Sequence record: NC_022096.1
Length of the DNA stretch: 64,000 nucleotides
Reading direction: 5' to 3' (one strand)
Positions 50,476 to 62,787 of the stretch are shown piece after piece. The translations under genes were made by a program, and so were the position numbers. The notes below the pieces were generated by a model. The model was not told the origin of the DNA, searched no databases, and saw only the letters and a program-made list of their open reading frames with translations. Position 1 is the stretch's first letter. Every line of letters begins with the position of its first letter.

Positions 50476-50949
50476 TCAACTCTTGTACCGAATCGGACCA
50501 CTCAGGACAGCCTGGGCGGTAGAAGCCACAGCTTCCTCTTCTTCGTCCGCTTCTTCCTCATCCTCTTCGAGGTCTTCGTCGACCCCGTTCACGTCTTCGT
50601 CGTCTTCGAGGAAATCCTCGTCGAGCGCTTCATCCGCGAAGTCATCACCGTCCAGCTCATCACCCTCGTCGAGGAACGACGCAGTTGCGAGTTGGCGAGA
50701 TACACGATTGGACAGGGAAACGAAATCAGTTGCGGAGGCTGCTGCCAGAGACGGCGCAAGTGTGTTTTCCGCTTGTGGCGTAGAGCCATCATTCCGCACC
50801 GCAGTGGGCGCAGGCTTCATCACCTCAGACACGAACTGGGTAAGGTCGTCACCGAACTCACCAGCTTTGGCCATGTACTTGAGGCAGTCTTCCTGGTTGC
50901 CCTGCTGAAGGGCGATAACGGCAAGCGCGAGAAACTGTTTGCCGCTCAT
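50476..50949 (-). CDS. acidic head-associated protein
   Basis: start MSGKQF (AGGAG RBS); D/E-rich C-terminus; follows the capsid gene. Confidence 0.7.
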   Translation of the reverse strand: MSGKQFLALAVIALQQGNQEDCLKYMAKAGEFGDDLTQFVSEVMKPAPTAVRNDGSTPQAENTLAPSLAAASATDFVSLSNRVSRQLATASFLDEGDELDGDDFADEALDEDFLEDDEDVNGVDEDLEEDEEEADEEEEAVASTAQAVLSGPIRYKS

Positions 50950-51055
50950 CGTTCGTACTCCTGCAAAGGGTGTAGACTGAAACGCAGGCGGGTCGGAGGG
51001 CGCTCTCCTAACCGCCTGCATCATGTACTACACGCAGCACGCTGTCCCAGTGGGA

Positions 51056-52162
51056 TTAGGCGCGCTTGCCCTTGACGACGGAGCGAACGTTGGCCAGGAC
51101 GAGCGAGAACGGCTCGACCATGAACCAGCCGCGGGTGCTGTTACCGGCATCGGCGCCGTTGGTCGGGGTGGACTGGATGCCGCCACGAGTGGAGTAGGCA
51201 CCGTGGTTACGCGGATCGGAGACCACGTAGATTTCGCCCGGGTTCAGGACCTTCTGGTTCGGCTGGCGGAAGGCATCGGTGATGATGTTCATGCCGACCA
51301 GGGTACCGATCTGACCGTTCAGCACCAGGTCATACTTGGTGATCGGGTCGAAGAAGGTGGCGAAGTCGTTGCTGCCGATCACGTCGGCCCAGTAGTCGTT
51401 GGCCAGCAGGATGTGAGTAGCCGGCAGGCCCCACTTGGCGATTTGCTGACGCAGACGACCCAGGTTCTTGGTGGTCAGTTCGCCGGCGATCAGCTCCAGG
51501 TTGTTGACGACGCCGACGGTCTGGTCAGCGGCCTTCTTCCACAGGCGGTCTTCGGCAACCATGATGGCTTGCAGACCGTCGTTGTAGGCGTGGTCCAGCA
51601 GGTCACCGTTGACTTGTTGGATGTCCAGGTTTTCAACGCGAACGTTGGCCTGAATCTCGAACTCGTCCGGGGTGAACACGCGCTGACGAATGGTCTGGTA
51701 GCCGGTGTTGCTGGAGCTGGTGGCGACCACGGCCATGGTGTCGTGAGCGGGCATCGGAACGCGCTGTACTTCGCCTTGCTTGAGGGTGTTACCCACCATC
51801 AGCTTGCGGACGAAGCCTTCGCGGTCAGCTTGGTCGCTGATCTGCTGAGCCAGGCTGGCACCCAGAGCGGACCACTTCTGCGGGTCAACCATGGCTTCGC
51901 GCAGCACTTCGCGGCGAGCTTCGGCAGCAGCCACAGCTTCTTCGCGGGCGCTCGGAGCGCGACGTTGTTCGATGATTTCGCCGGAAGCGTAGGCGGACAT
52001 CATCTGGCCGATGACCTGCATGGCCTCCTTGACGGAACCGGCGTTGATTTCGCCAGTCGAGGAGCTCAGGGCCAGCTCGCGGCCTTTGCCGAGACGCAGG
52101 TCTTCCAGGGGCGAGCCGTCCTTCAGGACCATGCGGGCGCCGGTGAATGCGTGTTGAGTCAT
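51056..52162 (-). CDS. major capsid protein
   Basis: 368 aa; HK97-like region FVRKLM...VPMP...FEIQANVRV...AIMVAEDRLW; strong codon bias; GGAG RBS. Confidence 0.85.
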   Translation of the reverse strand: MTQHAFTGARMVLKDGSPLEDLRLGKGRELALSSSTGEINAGSVKEAMQVIGQMMSAYASGEIIEQRRAPSAREEAVAAAEARREVLREAMVDPQKWSALGASLAQQISDQADREGFVRKLMVGNTLKQGEVQRVPMPAHDTMAVVATSSSNTGYQTIRQRVFTPDEFEIQANVRVENLDIQQVNGDLLDHAYNDGLQAIMVAEDRLWKKAADQTVGVVNNLELIAGELTTKNLGRLRQQIAKWGLPATHILLANDYWADVIGSNDFATFFDPITKYDLVLNGQIGTLVGMNIITDAFRQPNQKVLNPGEIYVVSDPRNHGAYSTRGGIQSTPTNGADAGNSTRGWFMVEPFSLVLANVRSVVKGKRA

Positions 52163-52213
52163 GTTCGTTTTCTCCAAAAGGAATTGATGCGACGCAGACG
52201 GACTGGCGCGCGA

Positions 52214-52900
52214 TTACACGTTGACGCGCAGGACCAGCGCGGCGTTCTCGGCGCTCGGGGCGCTGATGATCTGGACGTTGGTCAGCAGGGTGCCGCTACC
52301 GCCGACGGTGAAGCGACCGTCCGGGCCGAGGCGCGGAGTGATCTGACCAGCGAAGTCGGCACTGGCGTCGAAGAAGGTGGTAGCCACTTCGCCGCGGGTG
52401 ATGACGCCGGTAACGCCCTGGTAGGAAGCGGAGATACCGCCGATCGGTGCGTCGCCCAGAATCTGACGAGCTTCGCTCAGGGTCGGCTCGTAGGCCATCT
52501 GGATGCTGTAGGAAGCACCGACGTGATCGCCGTGGAAGGTCACGACTTGGCCAGCCAGTTGAACGGCAGTGGCATCAGCCGGAGCGCCAGCACCGACGGT
52601 AACCTTGGTGCCTTCGACCTTGACCAGCACTTGGCCAGCCAGCGGCAGACGCGGCAGTTCGATGGCGCCCGAAGCCGGGACGACGCCTTCGCCAACCCAG
52701 GGCAGGATTTCCGGCGGGCTATTGCGGGTCATGGCGATACCAGCGAAGACTTCGCCGCTCGCGCCAGTGGACGGCTTGACGACGGTCTCGTTGCCTTCGA
52801 CCACGTTGACCAGGGCAACGCCTTCTTCACGGATGATGCTGCCAGTTTCGACTTTGCGGTGCTCGGTCAGGAACAGGCGAGTGTATTTTTGAACCAGCAT
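52214..52900 (-). CDS. head decoration/cement-like structural protein
   Basis: 228 aa between scaffold and capsid; SGEVFAGIA. Confidence 0.65.
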   Translation of the reverse strand: MLVQKYTRLFLTEHRKVETGSIIREEGVALVNVVEGNETVVKPSTGASGEVFAGIAMTRNSPPEILPWVGEGVVPASGAIELPRLPLAGQVLVKVEGTKVTVGAGAPADATAVQLAGQVVTFHGDHVGASYSIQMAYEPTLSEARQILGDAPIGGISASYQGVTGVITRGEVATTFFDASADFAGQITPRLGPDGRFTVGGSGTLLTNVQIISAPSAENAALVLRVNV

Positions 52901-52917
52901 GGTGTGTTCTCCAGGTA

Positions 52918-54849
52918 TTAGCGCTTACCGAGACCAGCCAGTGCGAGAGTCATACGCGCGGCGAAGTCTTGGGGCTGATGGGTGGACGCAGTGGCTTCTT
53001 CGCGCACCGTTTCCTTCTTCTCGACCTGCACCGGACGACCGAGTGGCATCGGGGCAGAAGACGCGTTGGCTTCTTCGCTGGCATTGGTGCCGGCGAGAGC
53101 CTCGGCGATTTCGTTCTGGGTTTCGAGGCTGTAACCCATGATCTGGTTCGCCTTGGCGAGCAGCATCGAGTGGTAGGCGTCGCTGTGTTGCGCGAAAGCC
53201 TTGGCCACCAGGGCGGAAGCGTTGTCGAGACCCACAGAGGACAGCGATTCGATCAGCGATTGCTGGATCGGGTTCGACTGGCCTTTGAAGAAGTTCTTGC
53301 TGTAGCCCAGGGCGGCAGTAGCGAGGGCGCCGTTCAGACGGTCCTGCAGTTCTGCTTTGTCGCGCTCGGCGCTGGCAGTGACTTCTTGGGTACGTGCAGC
53401 GACTTGCTGGGCAACCTCGGCCTGGACATAGTCCGCGACCTGGATTTCAGGCTTGATTTCCTGGAAGCCCATGTTCTCCAGCGCGGCAGGAACACCGTGC
53501 TGACTGGCTTGCGCTTTGAAGGCGCGGCCGAACACTTCGCTGTTGAAGATTTCCTTGTGCTTGTCGCAGGCGGAAGCCATTGCGATAGCCATCGGAACGC
53601 GGTCGTAGAAAGCGACCCAGGCGTTTTCGCCTTGAACGTTGGCATACGCCACGTCCAGCTTGCTCACGTCCATGTCGCCGCTCAGGGCAACGAAGGAGGC
53701 GGCAACGGCGACCATGCGCTCAGGCTCTTGGACGGAAGCAGTAGCTTCTTCGACACGAGGCTTACGATTGCGAGCGCGGCCGTTGTCGGCGTAGCGGACG
53801 CTGGAGACGGACAGGGTGAGGGAATCGTCTTCCTCATCATCCTCTTCTTCGTCTTCTTCGTCGAGGTCATCCTCGTCCTCATCGGACTCGTCTTCTTCCT
53901 CTTCCTCGTCGTCTTCTTCCTCGTCTTCTTCGGACTCATCGTCCTCTTCGTCGAGGTCGTCCTCTTCTTCCTCATCCTCATCCTCGTCGTCCTCATCGGA
54001 CGCCAGGGCAGGATTCAGATCGTCGCGGACTTCGCCAACATCGGAGTCGTCTTCGACACCGGCAGTGGCTTCTTCGTCTTCCGGGTCCAGCAGGCCGGAC
54101 GAGCAGCTCGGGCAGAAGACCGGCATGTCGTCGCTGGATACCACGTGGGCACCGCAGGCGCTGGAGGCGCAGACGAAGTGGTGGGCGTCCAGCTCGGCGC
54201 CGGAACTGGAGAGGGACTCCAGAATGCTCGGCTGCTGGTCAGCGACCACAGTGGCTTCATTGCCGGTGTACACGTCGTAGTTGGCGTCGCCAGCTACAGC
54301 GATCAGCACGTCGCCAGACTTGATGGTACGGGTTTCACCTTCACCGCTGATAGCGGCGCGGTAGGCGGCAACAGCTTCTTCCAGGGTCTTACCGGAGGCG
54401 ATGGCGCTTTCCTGAACCTGGCAGCCGTCGCATTCGCCGTCTTCTTCACCAGCCGACAGGGCAGCGATCTGCTCGTCGGTCAGGTCTTCGAGAACGGAGG
54501 CGCAGGCAGGGCAATGCTTGAGCAGCTCGGCGTCATCCGCGAGGATGTGCGCGTTGCAGCCGGCGGTGCACACGGTGTAGTTGACGTTGACGGCGTCGCT
54601 GTCGGACGACAGGAACTCCATTTGCTCGACCAGACCATCACCAACTTTCAGGTCATCCACGCCGGTCAGCGGGTTGAGCATGTTGATGTCGGAGCTAGCG
54701 GACGACAGGACGACGAAAGAATCGTCTGCGGTGTGCAGGGCCTGTGCGTCTTGGCCAGTGGCCACAGCGCGATAGAGTTCTTGAACGTCTTCCAGAGAGT
54801 TGCCGGCAACCACGATACCGCGGATGGGGGTACGTTGATGCTTGGACAT
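52918..54849 (-). CDS. prohead core/scaffold-like protein with zinc ribbons and long acidic tract
   Basis: 643 aa from MSKHQ; two C...C-x(12-14)-CPxC units; D/E run at about 53820-54000. Confidence 0.7.
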   Translation of the reverse strand: MSKHQRTPIRGIVVAGNSLEDVQELYRAVATGQDAQALHTADDSFVVLSSASSDINMLNPLTGVDDLKVGDGLVEQMEFLSSDSDAVNVNYTVCTAGCNAHILADDAELLKHCPACASVLEDLTDEQIAALSAGEEDGECDGCQVQESAIASGKTLEEAVAAYRAAISGEGETRTIKSGDVLIAVAGDANYDVYTGNEATVVADQQPSILESLSSSGAELDAHHFVCASSACGAHVVSSDDMPVFCPSCSSGLLDPEDEEATAGVEDDSDVGEVRDDLNPALASDEDDEDEDEEEEDDLDEEDDESEEDEEEDDEEEEEDESDEDEDDLDEEDEEEDDEEDDSLTLSVSSVRYADNGRARNRKPRVEEATASVQEPERMVAVAASFVALSGDMDVSKLDVAYANVQGENAWVAFYDRVPMAIAMASACDKHKEIFNSEVFGRAFKAQASQHGVPAALENMGFQEIKPEIQVADYVQAEVAQQVAARTQEVTASAERDKAELQDRLNGALATAALGYSKNFFKGQSNPIQQSLIESLSSVGLDNASALVAKAFAQHSDAYHSMLLAKANQIMGYSLETQNEIAEALAGTNASEEANASSAPMPLGRPVQVEKKETVREEATASTHQPQDFAARMTLALAGLGKR

Positions 54850-54997
54850 GTGGTTGTCTCCAAGGAAGTTTGCAGGGTTGGCAGGACCAACAGCCTGCGA
54901 CTTGTTATCGCAACTTCTGTCACGATACGCATAAATTGCAAAAAGCAAAAATGCGCTCCAAATCGCAGATTGTCAGCAAGTTGTATAAACAGCAGAA

Positions 54998-55960
54998 TTA
55001 GGCCTTCTGCTGCTTGTTGCGCATCCGAGTGAGTTTCTCCAGCAACGCCTTGCGTTCAGCCTTGTTGGTGGCCTTACCGATGGTAGTAACAGCAATGCTT
55101 CCATCGAGGCGCCGGCGAGCACCTGCCTTGTTGCGGAAGACGTGAAGGTCCCCGTTCGGATGGATAACGATTGGCAGGTAACCAAAGGCGGTAGTCAGTA
55201 CGCCTTCGATGGCATAGGGCGTACGGCCGCCAGGATGCTTCTTGAACACGTTTTTGATTCGGAAACCGTATTCCTTGAACTCAGCTTTGATCGGATCGAC
55301 CACGCTCTTGGGTGCAGTTACCCAAGTAGACGGTTTCTTATCCGGCTTGGCTACCGAAGCCTTGGGTGTGATCGTCGCTTTCGGCTTGAACGTGTCCGCG
55401 GAGAGGCGCTTAACGGCACGATTCGGTCGCACACCCATACGGGATTCTGCGGCGGCTTTGTCCGGATATGGACCAGAGAGCGGCGTTGCAGGGCGCGTGG
55501 ACGTATCCACCACGAACCAAGCTTTGTCACCAGCGGGTGTTGCAGCTTTCGCCTTCGCTTTCAACAAAGCCAGTTTGTTCTCCAGCTTGGCACGATCTTC
55601 AACCTTCAAGCGAACTCCTGTGATCTTTCCGTCGAGGGCGGCTTTTATCAGGCCCTTTAAGTCGGTACGCTTGAATTTTTTCAGCTGGGTATCTGACAGA
55701 ATGTGCCGCTTGCTGCTCCACATGTTACGAAGGTCGCCATCAGCCAGATAGTGCGTATAGCACGGAGAGGCTGCGAAGCCTTCGATCTTGATGCGATCCA
55801 CTTTCGGGTCACCGATACCACGAGCTGCACTGGTGCGACGGGCGCCCAGTTTCCAGACATTCATGGAATCGATTTTGCCGTTCTTTTCCGTGTAAACGAT
55901 GTCACCTGACTGGAGCGCTTTCGCAGCCACCGCTTCCAGAAGATTGATTTTGATGAGCAT
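54998..55960 (-). CDS. basic hypothetical protein, candidate internal head protein
   Basis: 320 aa Lys/Ala-rich; N-terminus MLIKINLLEAVAA. Confidence 0.7.
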   Translation of the reverse strand: MLIKINLLEAVAAKALQSGDIVYTEKNGKIDSMNVWKLGARRTSAARGIGDPKVDRIKIEGFAASPCYTHYLADGDLRNMWSSKRHILSDTQLKKFKRTDLKGLIKAALDGKITGVRLKVEDRAKLENKLALLKAKAKAATPAGDKAWFVVDTSTRPATPLSGPYPDKAAAESRMGVRPNRAVKRLSADTFKPKATITPKASVAKPDKKPSTWVTAPKSVVDPIKAEFKEYGFRIKNVFKKHPGGRTPYAIEGVLTTAFGYLPIVIHPNGDLHVFRNKAGARRRLDGSIAVTTIGKATNKAERKALLEKLTRMRNKQQKA

Positions 55961-55969
55961 GGTAGGTCC

Positions 55970-56212
55970 TTATTGGTTGTACGCTTTGGAATTTTTCATC
56001 AGACTGTCGTATACGACAGGTGAGATGGCAAACACCTCGTCGTTCAGTTTGATCTGACGACCCTTATTAGTGATCGCTAAGCTGAACACTTGGCCGGTTT
56101 GTACCGTACCGATGTCCAGCTGAGTGTCGCGTCCTTTGTACACGCGATGGAACCATCGCGGCTCATCGCCGGCCAGGGCTTCATTCAGGTTGATCTTGAT
56201 GCGCACGATCAC
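55970..56212 (-). CDS. small hypothetical protein, candidate internal head protein
   Basis: GTG start overlapping TopIB stop; N-terminus VRIKINLNEALAG. Confidence 0.65.
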   Translation of the reverse strand: MIVRIKINLNEALAGDEPRWFHRVYKGRDTQLDIGTVQTGQVFSLAITNKGRQIKLNDEVFAISPVVYDSLMKNSKAYNQ

Positions 56213-57897
56213 TCTTCCTTCTTGGTGGAGTCGATGGCTTTCTGCACCTTGGCACTCGGGCGAATGCCCAGCTTGGTGTAAAACTCCGCCAGAATCTCCG
56301 GGCTGATGTAGTTTTGAATAGCCGTGTTGCTGGTGATCTTGTCGCCACTCATGTGACCAAGCTCGGCACCGATCTTGAGCAGTTCGGTCTCCAACCACTT
56401 GTGGACATCACGATCTTTCCAGTTGCCGCCTTTCTTGAACGGGCTGTCCTTGAGCAGCGCCAGTGCCATCTCAGTACCGCGCGCCGTACGCAGCTTGTGC
56501 ACCGTGAAGGCTTTCGGGAAGCCTAGGGTACGCATGTAGCGGTTGATCATGGCGCCAGTGACCTGAGCGTTCTTGAAGGTGAACACGTGGTCGTTCGAGC
56601 CTTTGCCTTCGATCAGCTTGTGCAGAGCATCGCCCAGTTGCTTGCCACGCGCCGAAGTGAACTTGAGCTTGTGGGCCTGCTTACCGCCGGACTTGCCGAT
56701 GTAGGTAACAGTGGCGCCATTGCCTTGGGTGTTGAACTTGAAGTGCTTGACCAGAAGCTGCGTGGCGCCGTACGTCTTCTCGCCACCTGTGGCTGCATTC
56801 TTGTTGCCGACGCGAGCGCTGGTGTCGTAGATGAACTCGCACAGTGTCGCCAGCACACCTTCTTTCGACTTGTTGACCTTGCGCAGATCAGGCAGCCACT
56901 TCTTGGTCAGTTGGCTGAGCTTCGGCATGACTTCGGCCACGACGTTGAATTTCTCGGCCTTGGCGCCAGTACGGTACGACTCGGTGTAACCGCGGGTCGC
57001 GTTCTGGGCGAACGGCGGCGTGAACTCGCAGACGTATGCGTTGTCCTCGTCGGCGTTGTACTTCGGATTCATCTTCACTTCACCGCTGGGGCTTTGCAGC
57101 AAACGCTTGCCGGCAGTGGTGTAGAAGCGGCCCAGGTCATCGATGTTGCCAACGAATCCAGTAGGTAGGTTGTGGACGATACCCAGCGACTTGAGCTGGG
57201 AGATAACGTCACGCAACGGCAGATATGGCTGGCCAGATGCACGCACCAGATTCGCCAGAGCCTTCTTGAAGATGTCGTTGACTTCCCGGCGGAGCTTCAG
57301 GTACTCGGTATGGCCCTGGGTTTTCTCACCCTTGGCTTTGTTGTGTGCCTGCCACTTCTCCAGAACTTCGGTGGGCATGATGTAGCCAGATACGCCACCA
57401 TGGCGCTTCACCAGAGCTTGCAGCTTCTTGTACACGTCGCCGGTATCGATGCCATCAACGTCGTGCGTGTAGAACTGCGTAACCATCGGATCGCCGATGG
57501 CCGTGACGCCGCGCAGCAGTCGCTTGGCGGCAGACTCGCTACCAAAATGCGCCAGACGGAAGTCTTTGAGTAGCCCGAGTTGGGCGCGGCTGATGTCCGT
57601 TTCCTTCTCGAATGCCTGGGTCTTGGCTTTCAGTGCTTCCAGCAGCTCGGTGATGGCAGCATCTGCGGTATCGTCTTCTGCTGGATTGGCGCCACCAACC
57701 ACAGAGCGCACGGCAGCGCTGGTGAGTTTGGTGAGTTTGAATTTGGTCAGAAACTCACCCGCATCGCGCTCCCACATGTTCATGCGGCGCAGTTGCTCTC
57801 GATTGAGCTTGATGTCGTAGGTGACGTAGAGGGTTGCCAGTAGCTTTAGGAAGGAGACAACCGAATCCTTCTGTACGGCGCTAAGACTGGTGTGCAT
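56209..57897 (-). CDS. type IB DNA topoisomerase with long N-terminal extension
   Basis: ARVGN (Arg), TYGATQL, GKSG (Lys), KLRT (Arg), ELGH (His), NYISP (Tyr). Confidence 0.85.
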   Translation of the reverse strand: MHTSLSAVQKDSVVSFLKLLATLYVTYDIKLNREQLRRMNMWERDAGEFLTKFKLTKLTSAAVRSVVGGANPAEDDTADAAITELLEALKAKTQAFEKETDISRAQLGLLKDFRLAHFGSESAAKRLLRGVTAIGDPMVTQFYTHDVDGIDTGDVYKKLQALVKRHGGVSGYIMPTEVLEKWQAHNKAKGEKTQGHTEYLKLRREVNDIFKKALANLVRASGQPYLPLRDVISQLKSLGIVHNLPTGFVGNIDDLGRFYTTAGKRLLQSPSGEVKMNPKYNADEDNAYVCEFTPPFAQNATRGYTESYRTGAKAEKFNVVAEVMPKLSQLTKKWLPDLRKVNKSKEGVLATLCEFIYDTSARVGNKNAATGGEKTYGATQLLVKHFKFNTQGNGATVTYIGKSGGKQAHKLKFTSARGKQLGDALHKLIEGKGSNDHVFTFKNAQVTGAMINRYMRTLGFPKAFTVHKLRTARGTEMALALLKDSPFKKGGNWKDRDVHKWLETELLKIGAELGHMSGDKITSNTAIQNYISPEILAEFYTKLGIRPSAKVQKAIDSTKKEE

Positions 57898-58852
57898 GGC
57901 CTATCTCATCGTATTGGGCGAAGTAGTCGCGCAGGCGCACTGGACCTTTGTCGGTCACAACGCACCCGTCCTCGACCTTAACTGCCGATTGAATGGAACG
58001 GAAGCGGCACACATGGAATGCCATAAACTGGTCAAATTCATGCGTGCCAAATTCAGGAGCTTTCACCATGGCTCGCCACTTGACGAGAATCGGGTGCTCC
58101 AAATCGCAGGCCTCAGGCAGTTCGCCGTATGCGTAGGCATGTTCCAGCCACGACAGTACGTCCGTCTTCTTGCCGTCAGCAGAGTAGATTGGGCGTTGGA
58201 ATTTGAACAAGGCTGTGGTCGAGTAGTATCCGGTGTCCACGGAAGTTCGGCAGAACAGAGCCAGATCGTGGTAGTTGACCTGAGATACTATCTCGTCCAT
58301 GCTGTAGGCGCGCATGGACATAACGCGCCACATGGCGTCGTCAGGAACGATGAAGGCATACTGCTCTTTGCGGATGCTCTTTTCCTGAATACGCTTTAGA
58401 TCAGCCTCGTTGAGCTGTATCTCGAATTGCTGGTGTGCCAACGACAAAAGGTCACCCGACCTGCGGATAACCAGTTCTTCGTTGGGCATAATGCCGATGT
58501 TGTTCGTGAGGATAGGTGCGTTGGTCCGATACACCTCTTCGCTGCACTCACTTCGGTTTTGCTGCACTGTCTTGATCGGGATGATGTTGTTCAGGGTTAC
58601 GGCAATCACGTCATCGAGTCCGGCAAAAGGCACACCGGACTTCATGATGGCAGTAACGCGCATCTGCAAGACAATGAGGGATTTCACCACGTGCCTGTGG
58701 GAGAGAACGCTTCCAACCAACTCATACTGGGAAGTTTCCTTGGGCTTGATGCCCAGACTTTCCAGTAACTGCTGAGTCTCAGGCGTCAGAATGACGTCCT
58801 TGTTAAGGACGATTGAGACGGTGAAATTGTCGGCCTGAGACATGATGTGCAC
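57881..58852 (-). CDS. hypothetical protein
   Basis: about 320 aa, GAGG RBS. Confidence 0.75.
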   Translation of the reverse strand: MHIMSQADNFTVSIVLNKDVILTPETQQLLESLGIKPKETSQYELVGSVLSHRHVVKSLIVLQMRVTAIMKSGVPFAGLDDVIAVTLNNIIPIKTVQQNRSECSEEVYRTNAPILTNNIGIMPNEELVIRRSGDLLSLAHQQFEIQLNEADLKRIQEKSIRKEQYAFIVPDDAMWRVMSMRAYSMDEIVSQVNYHDLALFCRTSVDTGYYSTTALFKFQRPIYSADGKKTDVLSWLEHAYAYGELPEACDLEHPILVKWRAMVKAPEFGTHEFDQFMAFHVCRFRSIQSAVKVEDGCVVTDKGPVRLRDYFAQYDEIGHAHQS

Positions 58853-58853
58853 C

Positions 58854-59324
58854 TCATAGATTGTCCAAGAGGTAGCTCATCCGCTCGAAGAGGCTCAGAT
58901 ATTTCATCTGATGGATGTCTTTCTTGGGAACACGGAAACCAAGGTAGTAAACCTTCATCTTGCTCCAATCGCGACCTTCTGTCGGATCGATGACGCGGTC
59001 GTCGTCTTTCCGAACACAGAACGAATGGGGTTCGATCTTCCATGGGATCATCGGCTCTTCTCGCCAGATGATGTACCCAACGCACAGGTCGAGTTCATCA
59101 GCATTGCGGCGCTGAAACTCTACGGCGTTTTCGTGCGGCGTGTTTTCCGGCATGGTGCCGATGTATCGGCCTTTGTGTACGACTGGGAGAATGGCCAAAC
59201 GCTTCGGCAGGTCGCGCCAAAACTTGCGATTCTCGATCAGCGAATCGATGATGTTCTGAGGCAGTCGGTTTGTGGACATGCTCAGGCTGGCCAGTCGTCC
59301 TTTGAGACTGAATGAGACCTTCAT
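58854..59324 (-). CDS. hypothetical protein, possible transglutaminase/papain-like fold
   Basis: HENA...CVGY...PHSFCV...VIDPT...YYLG. Confidence 0.55.
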   Translation of the reverse strand: MKVSFSLKGRLASLSMSTNRLPQNIIDSLIENRKFWRDLPKRLAILPVVHKGRYIGTMPENTPHENAVEFQRRNADELDLCVGYIIWREEPMIPWKIEPHSFCVRKDDDRVIDPTEGRDWSKMKVYYLGFRVPKKDIHQMKYLSLFERMSYLLDNL

Positions 59325-59950
59325 GCAAAGTTCCTTAGGAAGTCATCAACGTGGCGGATGGATTCCGCAAAGACATCGTCCAGCGGCTTTGAGGCGTCGA
59401 TAATGATGAAGCTCGGATCGTCGGCGGCCCATGCGTGAAAATTAGCTCGGACCTTGGCGAAGTATTCAACGCCTCGGCTTTCGATCTGATCCAACTTGCC
59501 GTCACGATTTAGGACGCGCTGTTCGTAGATTTCGACAGGGATGTCATAGAACAGGGTCAAATCTGGCTTGACCAGCAGAGATTCCGCCAGCGCATGGACG
59601 GTCGGAACCTGTTCAGTACGCGCACCCTGGTACGCCGCAGTCGTGGCACAGTAGCGATCAGAGACCACCAGATAGCCACGATCCAAATACGGTTGAATGA
59701 TGTGCTTGGTGTGCTCGATACGGCTGGCGTAGAACAGCATGGTCTCGGTGATCGGGTCCAGCTGCGGATTTTGATTGTTCAACACCGTGCGAAGTTCACG
59801 ACAGAACTGGCTGTCCTTGTACTCACTGGCGACGAAGTGTGGAACATCTGAGTGGCTCAGGTAGTTTTCAATGTTGCGGGCATTGCTATCTTTTCCCGCC
59901 CCGTCGAGGCCCTCAAGCACAAGGAAGGCCCCACGTTTCTTGGCAGTCAT
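59321..59950 (-). CDS. tmk: thymidylate kinase
   Basis: LEGLDGAGKDS P-loop, LFYASR, VSDRY...AYQG, PDLTLFYDIP. Confidence 0.95.
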   Translation of the reverse strand: MTAKKRGAFLVLEGLDGAGKDSNARNIENYLSHSDVPHFVASEYKDSQFCRELRTVLNNQNPQLDPITETMLFYASRIEHTKHIIQPYLDRGYLVVSDRYCATTAAYQGARTEQVPTVHALAESLLVKPDLTLFYDIPVEIYEQRVLNRDGKLDQIESRGVEYFAKVRANFHAWAADDPSFIIIDASKPLDDVFAESIRHVDDFLRNFA

Positions 59951-59953
59951 ATC

Positions 59954-60442
59954 TTACTCCTCGAGGTAGAAGCGTTTGCGGCGTTTGCCTTCTGGGCAAT
60001 TTCTTCGTGAAGCACCGCCACGCCATGCCATCTTGATCAGCAGCTTCATCATCACCTTGTCGGCAACTTCGCGCCGTTTGGCAGGCTTGATGACCTTGAC
60101 GTTACCCATTGGAGTAAGCGTCATGACACCAACGCCGTAGGGCTTGATGTCGTTCAGGATTTGCTGATAGAACTTCGATTCGATCAACTTCGGAGGGAGG
60201 AATAGATACAGCTTGTTGGTGAACGGTAGGTACTCCATCCACTTGCTGTCCGACGTGTAGTCGGCTTTGCAGCTCTTAACCTCGACCCCAACAAGGTTCA
60301 TCTTGGTATTCATGCACAGCAGGTCGAGTCTACGCTCTCCTCTGCGGCCAACACCAAACTCGAAGAAGACGGCATACAGCTTTCGTATGTAGTAGTGCGA
60401 CGCAGCATCGGTCAGCACCTTTGTAACTTCCTTGCGACCCAT
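59954..60442 (-). CDS. MmcB-like PD-(D/E)xK endonuclease
   Basis: RRLDLL...VEVKSCKADYTSDSKWMEYLPFTNKLY. Confidence 0.8.
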   Translation of the reverse strand: MGRKEVTKVLTDAASHYYIRKLYAVFFEFGVGRRGERRLDLLCMNTKMNLVGVEVKSCKADYTSDSKWMEYLPFTNKLYLFLPPKLIESKFYQQILNDIKPYGVGVMTLTPMGNVKVIKPAKRREVADKVMMKLLIKMAWRGGASRRNCPEGKRRKRFYLEE

Positions 60443-60444
60443 GG

Positions 60445-61791
60445 TTAAATCCCCAACTGCGGGTACCGAAGCAGCGCATCCAGCTTGCGCCGTGTGATGA
60501 TTTCGCGCATCTTGGCGCGATAGTCGTACTGGGAGCAGCGCCCATCGAACCGTGCGAACACGGCTGTCAGCTTGCGTTTGACCTCTTGGTCGGCAAGCCC
60601 GCGAGCAATCGCCTTCTCGATGTCGATGAGTTCTTCTTCCGCATACGGGAAGATTTTGACAGCTGGGAAGTGCTCCCAGATGGCACGAATCTGATCGTCG
60701 GTACCAGAAGCCTTTTCCTTACGCATCCACGATGCAAACATCGGGAACGGCTGTGCGTAGTACGGCTCTTCCTTCTTCGACACCTTTAGCTTGCCAATGG
60801 CTTGCGAAGCGCCCTGCTCTTTGACATCGAACGTCTTTATCAGGCGACCTTTGGGGTCGACCACTTTCCACCAGAGCGGGAGCTTGCTCGGCGGAATCTT
60901 GCCGTTCTTGCTGATCTGTGGATAGTCGCGCATGGACGTCTGCGATGTGGTGACCAGGTCGATGACGTAGGACTTGGTAGGATCATTCTCACGTACCTGT
61001 CTGACCAGATCGTCGAACCTGTCTTCCAGGTCGAGGACGCTCCAGTAGTATTTGGCGTGGTTCGGATACTCAGGCGAGAACACGCGCAGGACGTGAGTCT
61101 CAACGTCGGAGGCCGCTTCTCGCTTCTCCCAGTCGAGGAGAATGCTGATGTTGAATCCGGCGCGATTGATCCGCTGCATTTCGGCTTGGAAGTATCGCCC
61201 GTGGCCGTCGTGCAGGATCGAGTTGTTGCCCTCGTCTATGCCTTTACGGAACAGATACAGGTGGATCATTTCGTGAAGCAGCGTGTCCACAAACAGGATC
61301 ATGTCCGCACTGATGCGCTTCATGTTCACGGTCATACGGTACAACGGCTTGCCACCCACAGAGTTGAACTGCGCCAATCCGAAGGGCGAGCTGGCGCCCT
61401 GGGACTTCTTGAACAGAAGGGACTTCGGGCACATGCCGTTGAAGTATTTCTCGTTGAAGTAGGCGTAGAGTTTCGGGATCAACTCGTAGGTCAGGTTGGG
61501 GATAAACGGGTAGGAAGGGTATTTCGGATGCGGAACGAATTGGAAATCGTCTGGCGTGCTGGACTTCATCAAGCGCAGATACGCTTTGTCCGTGGTGGTT
61601 GCACGAAATTTCAGCTTCGGCTCATCCAAGTGAATGATCGTGACCTTGGTGCCTTCGACCTTCACCTTGAATTGATCATTCGTCCCGACATCGATTTCGT
61701 ACTCATCGTTGTGCTTGTCGAGGACGATCGTGGCACGCCCATTATAGGTGTACGTCACGAATCCATTGTCGGATGCGATTGCAAGTTCCAT
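60445..61791 (-). CDS. SprT-like zinc metalloprotease domain protein
   Basis: start MELAIAS (GGAGG RBS); YAYFNEKYFNG, TLLHEMIH (HExxH), HGRYFQAEM. Confidence 0.85.
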   Translation of the reverse strand: MELAIASDNGFVTYTYNGRATIVLDKHNDEYEIDVGTNDQFKVKVEGTKVTIIHLDEPKLKFRATTTDKAYLRLMKSSTPDDFQFVPHPKYPSYPFIPNLTYELIPKLYAYFNEKYFNGMCPKSLLFKKSQGASSPFGLAQFNSVGGKPLYRMTVNMKRISADMILFVDTLLHEMIHLYLFRKGIDEGNNSILHDGHGRYFQAEMQRINRAGFNISILLDWEKREAASDVETHVLRVFSPEYPNHAKYYWSVLDLEDRFDDLVRQVRENDPTKSYVIDLVTTSQTSMRDYPQISKNGKIPPSKLPLWWKVVDPKGRLIKTFDVKEQGASQAIGKLKVSKKEEPYYAQPFPMFASWMRKEKASGTDDQIRAIWEHFPAVKIFPYAEEELIDIEKAIARGLADQEVKRKLTAVFARFDGRCSQYDYRAKMREIITRRKLDALLRYPQLGI

Positions 61792-61836
61792 GACTGGCCT
61801 CCAGTAACTTACCGTTAAATTACTTTGGATGGTGCG

Positions 61837-61869
61837 GAAACGAAAAAAGGCGACCCGGAGGCCGCCTTT
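61837..61869 (-). terminator. rho-independent terminator
   Basis: AAAGGCGGCC-UCCG-GGTCGCCTTT then TTTCGTTTC. Confidence 0.85.
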
Positions 61870-61876
61870 CATTGCG

Positions 61877-62347
61877 TCATGTTTCGCTCTTGTGTTTAGA
61901 CTCCAAAGCCCAATGTCGGTGTTCGCGCCATCCGATGGTTTCAGCAACTCGGAGTAACGCAACCACGTCCATGCCATTCGCCGGATCGCACTTCACCCAC
62001 TTCGACGAATCGATAGGTGGAGCGCAATGCTCGTCGTCCAGCACCAGATAGTCTTCAGGATTGTCGTGCCTATCCAACCACGCAGCAATCTCGTTATGCC
62101 TGCCGTCAATGTGGTCGCCAGTTGACCAGTCATCATGAAGCGTGCAGAGTATCCCGCGATCCTGCAGGTGCTTCTGCATACGTTCACGCGACTTGCCTTT
62201 GCGGACTGTCGAACTCACCACCACTCGCACGCGTGGTAATGCGAACAATTGATTCAAGACCGCAACAGCGACCGGGTCCGAGACCATACCCGCTAAATCT
62301 GAGCGCGGGTGGACGAACACTCCATCCTGATCGAGGAAGACTATCAT
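61877..62347 (-). CDS. HAD-superfamily phosphatase (Swiss Army Knife RNA-repair-like HAD)
   Basis: FLDQDGV, VVVSSTVR, EIAAWL, YLVLDD. Confidence 0.85.
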   Translation of the reverse strand: MIVFLDQDGVFVHPRSDLAGMVSDPVAVAVLNQLFALPRVRVVVSSTVRKGKSRERMQKHLQDRGILCTLHDDWSTGDHIDGRHNEIAAWLDRHDNPEDYLVLDDEHCAPPIDSSKWVKCDPANGMDVVALLRVAETIGWREHRHWALESKHKSET

Positions 62348-62787
62348 CTACCTAGTGCCTTTGCCATGTTCGTGAGGACGGTTTTGAAGTCGCCCTCGTG
62401 GGCGTAGTTGAAATACACTACGGAGTTTCGTTCCGCAATGAAGGAGACCTTCATCTTGGGCTTCGGAACTGCTCTCACTGGACGCGGCATCCACGGCGGC
62501 GGCGTAATACGCATCACCGTGGACGTCGGCCAGACCTCGAACTGGAAGGTGTAGGTACACTCGTCCTTCTGCGGCGTTGCGAATCGGAACACTACCAGGA
62601 GTGCAGGACTCTTCGCCTCGAGGGTGTCCACGACGACCGCAGGCTGCTGAATCAGCGAACCTTCGATCTGGACATCCTTGAACAAGGCGTGGGCCATGTT
62701 GCGGAGCGCAATCTTTTCAAAGTCTCGAATAGACGACTTGACGACCACGTCCTGAACGACGGTGTTTATTGAACTAAGGGAATACAC
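62344..62787 (-). CDS. hypothetical protein
   Basis: 147 aa, GGAG RBS; N-terminus MYSLSS. Confidence 0.7.
   Translation of the reverse strand: MYSLSSINTVVQDVVVKSSIRDFEKIALRNMAHALFKDVQIEGSLIQQPAVVVDTLEAKSPALLVVFRFATPQKDECTYTFQFEVWPTSTVMRITPPPWMPRPVRAVPKPKMKVSFIAERNSVVYFNYAHEGDFKTVLTNMAKALGR

Follow-up and report, generated by a model that had tools for sequence, protein, structure and literature searches.

In phage T4, the internal proteins reportedly carry a capsid-targeting sequence, which Mullaney and Black (1996, as cited in PMC10052503) are said to have described together with the prohead protease gp21, and the herpesvirus assemblin cuts its substrates at the consensus (V/L/I)-x-Ala↓Ser, where the arrow marks the bond that is cut. 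In the giant phages phiKZ and SPN3US, the proteases gp175 and gp245 cut after A-X-E or (S/A/G)-X-E (PMC10052503). Here we compare with these systems the head-gene region of PaBG, a giant Pseudomonas phage of the genus Baikalvirus. Its genome has 258,139 bp, and bases 1–64000 are identical to the 64,000-nucleotide stretch that was analysed (the window). A short motif, E-[ASV]-[LTVN]-[AS]-[SAG], recurs in head proteins encoded there, and an earlier reading of this DNA (the sequence-only reading) had taken it, together with related motifs at the N-termini of adjacent genes, for a head-maturation or targeting signal that marks packaged cargo. The best explanation of our data, which we regard as fairly probable, is that the motif is the site of the prohead protease and that the same motif ends a leader peptide of capsid cargo, so that PaBG would load and cut its internal proteins in the manner of T4 with a new specificity. 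Both a load-and-cut leader (T4) and pro-piece cleavage (phiKZ-like phages) are already known; what appears to be new is the proposed leader and cleavage code of the PaBG–Lu11 group, since in the literature that we searched neither has been described for PaBG, Lu11 or their relatives.

The motif is most concentrated in gp082 (52918..54849, minus strand, as are all genes of this region), a scaffold-like protein with two Cys4 ribbon-like motifs, an acidic run of about 100 residues and nine copies of the motif (EAVAA, ESLSS twice, EATAG, EATAS twice, EVTAS, EALAG and EANAS, at residues 158, 211, 260, 368, 489, 534, 583, 593 and 618). Only 0.36 copies were expected from the composition of gp082 itself, and 20,000 composition-preserving shuffles gave a mean of 0.35 and a maximum of 5, none of them reaching nine, so that the excess over a composition-matched background which the sequence-only reading had anticipated is borne out for the scaffold. 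The scaffold copies that it had listed, EAVAS in gp079 and all other peptides that it had quoted were likewise found, on the minus strand. Five of the nine copies keep a core at fixed columns within indel-rich linkers in an alignment of 75 metagenomic homologues. Site 211 (ESLSS, 54205..54219) lies in a linker, and small-x-small-small is kept at its column in the 75 homologues despite nearby indels; site 260 (EATAG, 54058..54072) stands at the start of the acidic run, where homologues have ATAS-D or SLSS-D; site 368 (EATAS, 53734..53748) follows directly after the acidic run and is A-x-A-S in homologues; site 593 (EANAS, 53059..53073) is ATAS, AVAS or SVSS; and site 618 (EATAS, 52984..52998) is 21 residues from the C-terminus, where a cut would sever an amphipathic tail. 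This tail motif was found 15–23 residues ahead of the C-terminus in all nine phages whose head proteins were compared (PaBG, Lu11, HRDY3, NCTB, Alexandra, JA11, Yoloswag, fHe-Yen9-02 and Afa-NA1), each with its own spelling (ATAS or AVAS in Pseudomonas phages, SQSS or SVSS in the others), and also across the family. The general core was over-represented 1.3–3-fold, and about 2.5-fold in most, in the 60 scaffold homologues for which this was tabulated. The remaining copies, at 158 (EAVAA, 54364..54378), 489 (53371–53385), 534 (53236–53250) and 583 (53089–53103), are in conserved helices, and their role as cleavage sites is doubtful.

The identity of gp082 as a scaffold is suggested by its gene neighbourhood, because the order protease, variable slot, gp082 homologue, gp081 homologue and capsid was found in Lu11, HRDY3, Alexandra, JA11, Yoloswag, fHe-Yen9-02 and Afa-NA1. 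The protein matches phrog_20988 but no convincing Pfam domain, since CDC45 alone was hit there, below threshold and along the acidic run, and it is absent from the 14 published virion bands. RefSeq and PHROGs name it 'ATPase', and GenBank names it '60S ribosomal-like protein L2-A'; neither name is supported by a domain, and, judged by its domain content, gp082 is not an ATPase. Its two C-x2-C ... C-x2-C ribbon-like motifs are each preceded by a similar small domain. In HRDY3 the scaffold gene (L003:7001-8976) is split into two open reading frames (ORFs), the second of which opens with M-A-T-A-S exactly where the conserved site follows the acidic run; the split may be a frameshift or a sequencing error.

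In the major capsid protein gp080 (51056..52162, minus strand), residues 1–74 constitute an N-terminal pro-piece and the motif EAVAA occupies residues 75–79 (nucleotides 51926–51940). When the capsid protein was modelled with AlphaFold2 (AF2; predicted local distance difference test, pLDDT, 84), HK97-fold chains aligned only to residues 75–368, and the alignment to the phage G capsid chain 6wkk started with residue 13 of that chain at PaBG residue 87. The computed mass loss was 20.0% for a cut between Glu75 and Ala76 and 20.6% for a cut between Ala78 and Ala79, which matches the loss of about 20% on maturation reported for the capsid protein in the published virion study, where several virion proteins were found to be processed (PMC7412058). 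In relatives among the nine phages the same column reads ATAS, STSA or SESS, and in the wider family a small-x-small-small sequence was present near the capsid boundary in 65 of 134 sequences (a raw count without background), with a spelling that clearly depends on the clade. ELALSS, to which the sequence-only reading had pointed near the capsid N-terminus, is indeed present in the pro-piece, but it belongs to a block conserved in most relatives and is not a clade-specific site; the copy of the motif at residue 75, EAVAA, had been missed.

The portal gene (70355-72232, outside the window) carries EATAG at residues 42–46, again at a pro-piece boundary: the PaBG portal is homologous to that of Lu11 from residue 47 onward and matches the PHROG portal family from residue 45, and Lu11 has ATAAG in the PaBG motif column, about 15 residues ahead of a conserved block. 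In gp079 (50476..50949, minus strand), an acidic head-module protein, a conserved N-terminal domain and an acidic tract are followed by EAVAS (residues 139–143, nucleotides 50521–50535) and a 14-residue basic tail ending IRYKS, and in the gp079 family of the nine phages each clade has its own motif (EAVAS, VESESS, FESSSS and others) and then a short [LI]-R-[LIY]-[KR] tail. Over the whole genome (288 proteins by our own gene calls, which agree with RefSeq over 30–70 kb), the regular expression of the motif gave 21 matches against 9.3 expected. Outside gp082 there were 12 against 8.9, so that enrichment is not general; these matches are nevertheless not randomly spread, since gp079, gp083, a 78-residue ORF, the portal and the capsid at residue 75 are among them. 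On this sequence evidence, the motif is most likely a prohead-protease recognition site in the scaffold, the capsid protein and the portal.

A protease that could act at these sites is encoded at 181459-182223, outside the window, by the orthologue of the 'head maturation protease' of the relatives. Its product shares 42–47% identity with the proteins of Lu11, HRDY3, Alexandra and JA11 and matches phrog_18299 'head maturation protease' (E = 2.9e-116). Its AF2 model (pLDDT 87.6) was compared with 48,161 chains, the best of which was T4 gp21 (5jbl: Z 11.7, root-mean-square deviation 3.2, 149/165 residues), followed by the proteases of varicella-zoster virus (VZV; Z 6.0) and human cytomegalovirus (HCMV; Z 4.8), with nothing else above 4.8; Foldseek also placed 5jbl at the top (E = 8e-4). 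The modelled PaBG protease thus has the fold of T4 gp21 and herpesvirus assemblin. When solved structures were searched by sequence with the protease, chance hits alone were returned. His121 and Ser177 are invariant in 37 homologues and form a putative catalytic pair.

In relatives the gene for the 'head maturation protease' is found directly upstream of that for the scaffold, within a contiguous order of ligase, glycosyltransferase, two genes, protease, variable slot, scaffold and capsid. In PaBG and close relatives this block is split: the protease side (genome 174356-182223) is about 125 kb from the scaffold side (window 52918-56206), to which the SprT-to-TopIB block is joined. Gene order indicates that the ligase-to-protease block was parted from the scaffold–capsid block by rearrangement. 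For the gene two places upstream of the protease (genome 179714-181105, plus strand), the RefSeq start at 180227 leaves out about 170 residues; the longer form begins MLLSLSLASK, an N-terminus that is conserved in the metagenomic relative L012 and resembles that of Lu11 gp074.

Comparison across the family showed which part of the motif is kept. The family-wide core is small-x-small-small, [AS]-x-[AS]-[SAG], whose position is preserved in the scaffold (75 homologues), the capsid (nine phages) and the portal (Lu11), whereas the preceding residue depends on the clade: Glu in that of PaBG, mostly Val or Ile in that of Lu11. In Lu11, HRDY3 and the Erwinia/Dickeya clade the core stands at the same columns and is preceded by V, I, Q, K, T or D. 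Since Glu is replaced by Val or Ile in the Lu11 clade, it is a feature of one clade and not a family-wide determinant. The sequence-only reading had built Glu into its motif and cited T4 gp21 and phiKZ gp175, which cleave short Glu-containing motifs; as a family-wide determinant Glu had to be given up. Its proposal that the group has a cleavage code of its own survives in the clade-specific spellings at preserved positions, though not in a family-wide Glu. Family-wide conservation favours A-x-A↓S as the predicted bond, with Glu↓Ala as the alternative. A cut at A-x-A↓S would keep the P3-x-P1 layout of phiKZ-type enzymes, but with a small P1 as in herpesvirus assemblin. Pairing of protease and scaffold clusters for specificity-determining residues yielded too few independent pairs in the Glu-bearing clade.

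The same core ends a leader found at the very N-termini of several genes. Translated in six frames, the 258 kb genome contains I[KH]IN four times, and in all four cases it lies at residues 2–7 of an ORF, with its first residue at position 3 or 4, and is followed by E-A. The ORFs are gp083, 55970-56206, 176296 (leader MAAIKINLAEAA) and 176730 (leader MALIHINADGSFEAVAA). The sharing of IKINLxEA is far beyond chance; the sequence-only reading had recognised it in the genes at 54998 and 55970, where it is real and sits on unrelated proteins, and the genes at 176296 and 176730 extend it. Next to these two, the gene at 177732-178082 (plus strand, outside the window) starts MQLLIAMASA, which resembles the start of Lu11 gp068.

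Similar leaders were found in relatives, in the closest of which the genes that carry them form a variable array. Between TopIB and the scaffold, the metagenomic relative L013 has three leader genes (starts MLIKINMLQAVAA, MHIKISLKAEAS and MLIKINLLEAVAA), as does the metagenomic relative L015 (starts VRIKINMLESTSA, MRIKLNLNEAVAA and MLIKINLLEAVAA), and L012 has two after its ligase gene. In Lu11, where 50 kb and the head locus were covered, at least 13 genes have an MKIQLAVA-type start, namely TopIB and twelve further genes of gp202-gp219, and one more leader gene beside the scaffold gene (gp068, MKVYLAIAAS) brings the number to 14; none of gp159-gp201 has an MKIQLAVA-type leader. The spelling follows the phage (MEMMLALA-type in HRDY3, MKI(I/V)SISA-type in NCTB). 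All ten PaBG-clade leaders end [AS]-x-[AS]-[ASG], nine of them with Glu before or inside this core, and A-x-A↓S fits all ten, including one with Gln for Glu and two that read A-E-A-S and A-E-A-A. This ending is the spelling of gp082, the capsid protein, the portal and gp079, and the Lu11 and NCTB leaders likewise use the spelling of their own clades. The leaders are 6–18 residues long and consist of alternating hydrophobic residues followed by small-x-small-small. Since their codons vary synonymously and the DNA upstream differs, the leader is conserved at the peptide level. A DNA-level repeat or cassette as its origin was considered and rejected, because the leader codons differ. After removal of the first 18 residues the carrier proteins are unrelated to each other. 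The nine PaBG candidates are markedly basic: all have an isoelectric point (pI) of at least 8 and eight of at least 9, compared to 36% and 27% of the proteome (P about 1e-4). We consider that the leader probably addresses basic proteins into the capsid, by analogy with T4.

Within the window, the assignment as leader carriers is strong for gp083 and the 78-residue ORF. gp083 (54998..55960, minus strand; pI 10.3) is a basic virion protein with the leader MLIKINLLEAVAA (nucleotides 55922-55960) and was identified by matrix-assisted laser desorption/ionization (MALDI) as virion band 9 (PMC7412058). It has no homologue among sequenced phages, and comparison with the protein atlas yielded nothing usable; in its three metagenomic homologues the leader is unchanged save residue 2. 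The 78-residue gene (55970..56206, minus strand) has a GTG start, the leader VRIKINLNEALAG and an upstream ribosome-binding site, AAGGAAGAG. It is missing from RefSeq NC_022096 and from the 2020 re-annotation, whereas it is conserved and called in close relatives, where the L013 homologue has 79 residues and the leader MHIKISLKAEAS.

The candidacy of TopIB and gp086 is moderate. TopIB (gp084, 56209..57897, minus strand; PF01028) has the short candidate leader MHTSLSA (nucleotides 57877-57897), and its orthologues in Lu11, HRDY3 and NCTB each begin with the leader of their own phage, with homology only beyond it. For gp086 (58854..59324, minus strand), with the candidate leader MKVSFSLKGRLASLS, the Lu11 orthologue is gp202 (E = 8e-11, with the alignment starting at residue 29), which starts MKLYLTTASA, and the HRDY3 protein at the matching place, which resembles Lu11 gp202, starts MEMMLALAAA. 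We rate both as moderate because these Lu11 and HRDY3 orthologues (for TopIB also that of NCTB) carry each phage's leader. For the SprT-like metalloprotease gp089 and for gp091 the candidacy is weak. gp089 (60445..61791, minus strand) has, from the RefSeq start, an 11-residue extension, MELAIASDNGF, which contains A-I-A-S and precedes the KMPT-N domain (residues 11–74) and the SprT domain (residues 107–215). The long form of gp091 (62344..62787, minus strand; 147 residues) has a GTG start and the N-terminus (V/M)YSLSS. A GGAG precedes the GTG at 62787, the RefSeq ATG at 62697 is without a ribosome-binding site, and relatives call the 147-residue form, so that the annotated start of gp091 is probably wrong. 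Hence, of the N-termini that the sequence-only reading had grouped as related, those of TopIB and gp086 gain support from their orthologues, while those of SprT and gp091 remain weak and the short x-SLS N-termini do not match the Glu-containing motif (their class was found seven times against 2.3 expected, with a pattern chosen post hoc).

The KMPT-N domain (PF20294) also opens the gene at genome 173160-174350 and, in Dickeya and Erwinia phages, a gene between the head protease and the scaffold (L005:4026-5129, L004:5714-6910), and a leader protein of L015 has a weak KMPT-N match right after its leader. KMPT-N may be linked to incorporation into the head.

Placed beside T4, PaBG shares a short N-terminal peptide on unrelated, basic and fast-evolving proteins which is predicted to end in the site of the head protease, the same protease fold, and, as predictions for PaBG, the loss of an N-terminal pro-piece from the capsid protein and the degradation of the scaffold. 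It differs in that the leader sequence is unrelated, the core is small-x-small-small instead of (L/I)-x-Glu, the Pfam family S77 has no match, the carriers seem to include enzymes such as TopIB, and the protease gene is about 125 kb from the scaffold gene. Assemblins were the second-best structural matches, and both V/I-A-T-A-S of Lu11 and E-A-T-A-S of PaBG would fit a cut between Ala and Ser; moreover, assemblin also cuts the C-terminal tail of its scaffold, the part that binds the capsid. However, there is no sequence similarity to assemblin, which is fused to the scaffold, while the PaBG protease is a separate gene. The cargo-loading peptides of encapsulins likewise send unrelated enzymes into an HK97-fold shell by a short terminal peptide, as is proposed here for PaBG, and the capsid model has encapsulin shells among its closest structural matches, but those peptides are for the most part C-terminal and stay on the protein, and encapsulins have no protease, portal or DNA. 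With phiKZ and SPN3US (PMC10052503), PaBG has in common that it is a giant myovirus with many head proteins and, as predictions for PaBG, the loss of N-terminal pro-pieces from portal, capsid and internal proteins, some of them short (about 20 residues), several sites in each, a small P3 residue and a preference for Ser after the cut; it is not phiKZ-like, and in its family Glu is not conserved and small residues stand instead.

Several observations weigh against our explanation and have to be set beside the alternatives that they suggest. Pfam Peptidase_S77 (PF03420) matched nothing encoded by PaBG at E <= 10, and the protease itself had no Pfam hit. In four of the nine scaffold copies (158, 489, 534 and 583) the helix is conserved and the motif is lost outside the PaBG clade, and this, with the richness of gp082 in Ala, Ser and Glu and the background level of the regular expression outside gp082, would be expected if the motif were a compositional by-product of Ala-, Ser- and Glu-rich linkers and helices. 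Such an origin is very improbable and was rejected, since it is contradicted by the shuffles (maximum five against nine observed) and by the retention of five sites in position through indels in 75 homologues; it would also leave the motif exactly at the capsid and portal pro-piece boundaries by coincidence. A cut after Glu (E↓A-x-A-S) by the same mechanism, as for T4 gp21, phiKZ gp175 and SPN3US gp245, with A-x-A-S as a primed-side preference, is unlikely in our view but a serious alternative. Cleavage after Glu, with recognition of P3, is the rule for the gp21-type enzymes known so far, T4 gp21 has the nearest of the solved folds, and Glu precedes the core in 12 of 12 PaBG head-protein copies and in nine of ten PaBG-clade leaders. 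In addition, SPN3US gp245, which cuts after A-X-E, prefers Ser at P1' (PMC10052503). With Glu as P1, the conserved residues would fall on the primed side. On the other hand, other clades have V, I, Q, K, T or D at these columns though their proteases are 42–47% identical to that of PaBG, one leader has Gln there and two have Glu inside the core, and the residue three before Glu is not conserved in PaBG. Since Glu is not a conserved determinant, the parallel with the Glu-cutting T4 gp21 and phiKZ gp175 may fail for the bond that is cut.

For the leaders, enrichment over the whole proteome is at best slight. The regular expression of the sequence-only reading gave four matches in the first 20 residues of all proteins against 1.5 expected (P = 0.06, weak), and the loose core [AS]-x-[AS]-[SAG] gave 23 N-termini genome-wide against 20.6 expected, which is no enrichment; the N-terminal patterns that are enriched are composite leader patterns only, written after inspection of the data. 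Over its first 70 residues gp083 hardly varies among its homologues, so that a conserved domain may account for part of the conservation of the leader. In Lu11 the SprT orthologue, gp199, starts at its domain, without a leader. Of all leader carriers only gp083 is a proven virion component, the others not being among the 14 bands, so that the view of the marked genes as a packaged proteome stands for this one protein; the study behind these bands was done by sodium dodecyl sulfate–polyacrylamide gel electrophoresis and MALDI on 14 identified Coomassie bands, with shallow coverage (PMC7412058). These points would suit a situation in which the head-protein sites are real and the leader is a folded element, a stability or translation signal or another assembly tag, with small-x-small by composition only. 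We think this improbable, because the leader ends in the scaffold and capsid spelling of its own phage (EAVAA in PaBG, A-V-A or A-T-A in Lu11, S-I-S in NCTB) and is present on unrelated proteins and kept through synonymous codon changes, and its genes adjoin the scaffold gene in PaBG and close relatives, those of Lu11 being mostly arrayed after TopIB with one beside the scaffold gene. The A-x-A ending and the hydrophobic start also resemble the end of a Sec signal, and the leaders might accordingly direct proteins to export or to the membrane and be cleaved by the signal peptidase of the host under its A-x-A rule; but leaders of 6–18 residues with at most 3–5 hydrophobic positions, alternating, do not contain a hydrophobic core of 10–15 residues, for which reason a Sec signal peptide was rejected and is scarcely credible, and carriers that include DNA enzymes such as TopIB, as well as the same motif inside cytoplasmic head proteins, speak against it too. 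Taken as a head-maturation site, as the sequence-only reading had it, the motif is supported by its enrichment in the scaffold, the capsid and portal boundaries, its conserved position and a gp21-fold protease, while four of its nine scaffold copies remain doubtful.

If the motif is indeed the prohead-protease site and ends a cargo leader, head maturation in PaBG could proceed as follows. During prohead assembly the leader would dock the cargo in the scaffold core, by analogy with the T4 capsid-targeting sequence; the protease would then cut at the motif and remove the leader, and the cargo would stay in the head and be ejected with the DNA. The capsid protein would lose its first 75–78 residues and the portal about 42–45, gp082 would be cut at about five linker sites, one of which would sever the 21-residue C-terminal tail, gp079 would lose its basic C-terminal tail, and the scaffold fragments would leave the head.

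The genes around these are transcribed in the order gp093 (tail), gp092, gp091, HAD-like protein, SprT-like gp089, MmcB-like gp088, thymidylate kinase, gp086, gp085, TopIB gp084, the 78-residue ORF, gp083, scaffold-like gp082, gp081, capsid gp080, acidic gp079 and tail genes. gp081 (52214..52900, minus strand; phrog_16710) is a virion structural protein of the head module without a copy of the motif; it is virion band 12 and present also in several bands (PMC7412058). Neither Pfam nor PHROGs gave a match for gp079, gp083, the 78-residue ORF, gp085, gp086, gp091 or the genes at 176296, 176730 and 177732. In L013 a GIY-YIG (LEM-3-like) endonuclease gene (L013:12660-13493) lies between the capsid gene and the gp079 homologue, and PaBG is without it. 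Elsewhere in the PaBG genome, gp191 (139631-140629, plus strand, outside the window) is a published virion protein, extremely basic and rich in Ala, Lys and Pro, with histone H1-like repeats, and may be a DNA-condensing internal protein.

For the annotation of PaBG, these results mean that gp082, on its predicted domains, is not an ATPase, that the 78-residue gene has to be added to RefSeq and that the start of gp091 is probably wrong. For the wider group we put forward, tentatively, that in the PaBG, Lu11 and Erwinia–Dickeya jumbo phages a portable address of 6–18 residues would load a hypervariable set of basic proteins (TopIB, the SprT-like metalloprotease and acetyltransferases) for injection, and that their gp21-fold protease may have switched from Glu to A-x-A↓S, converging on assemblin, with E or V/I co-evolving with the protease by clade. 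A packaged TopIB would have a parallel in poxvirus virions. If this is true, there would be a natural change of specificity within the gp21/assemblin fold in which substrates and enzyme co-vary by clade, and the leader would be a short tag with which foreign proteins could be brought into large capsids. Gene starts alone would then suffice to read which proteins a whole group of jumbo phages packages and probably ejects, and this would give a list of candidate proteins for early host takeover or anti-defence.

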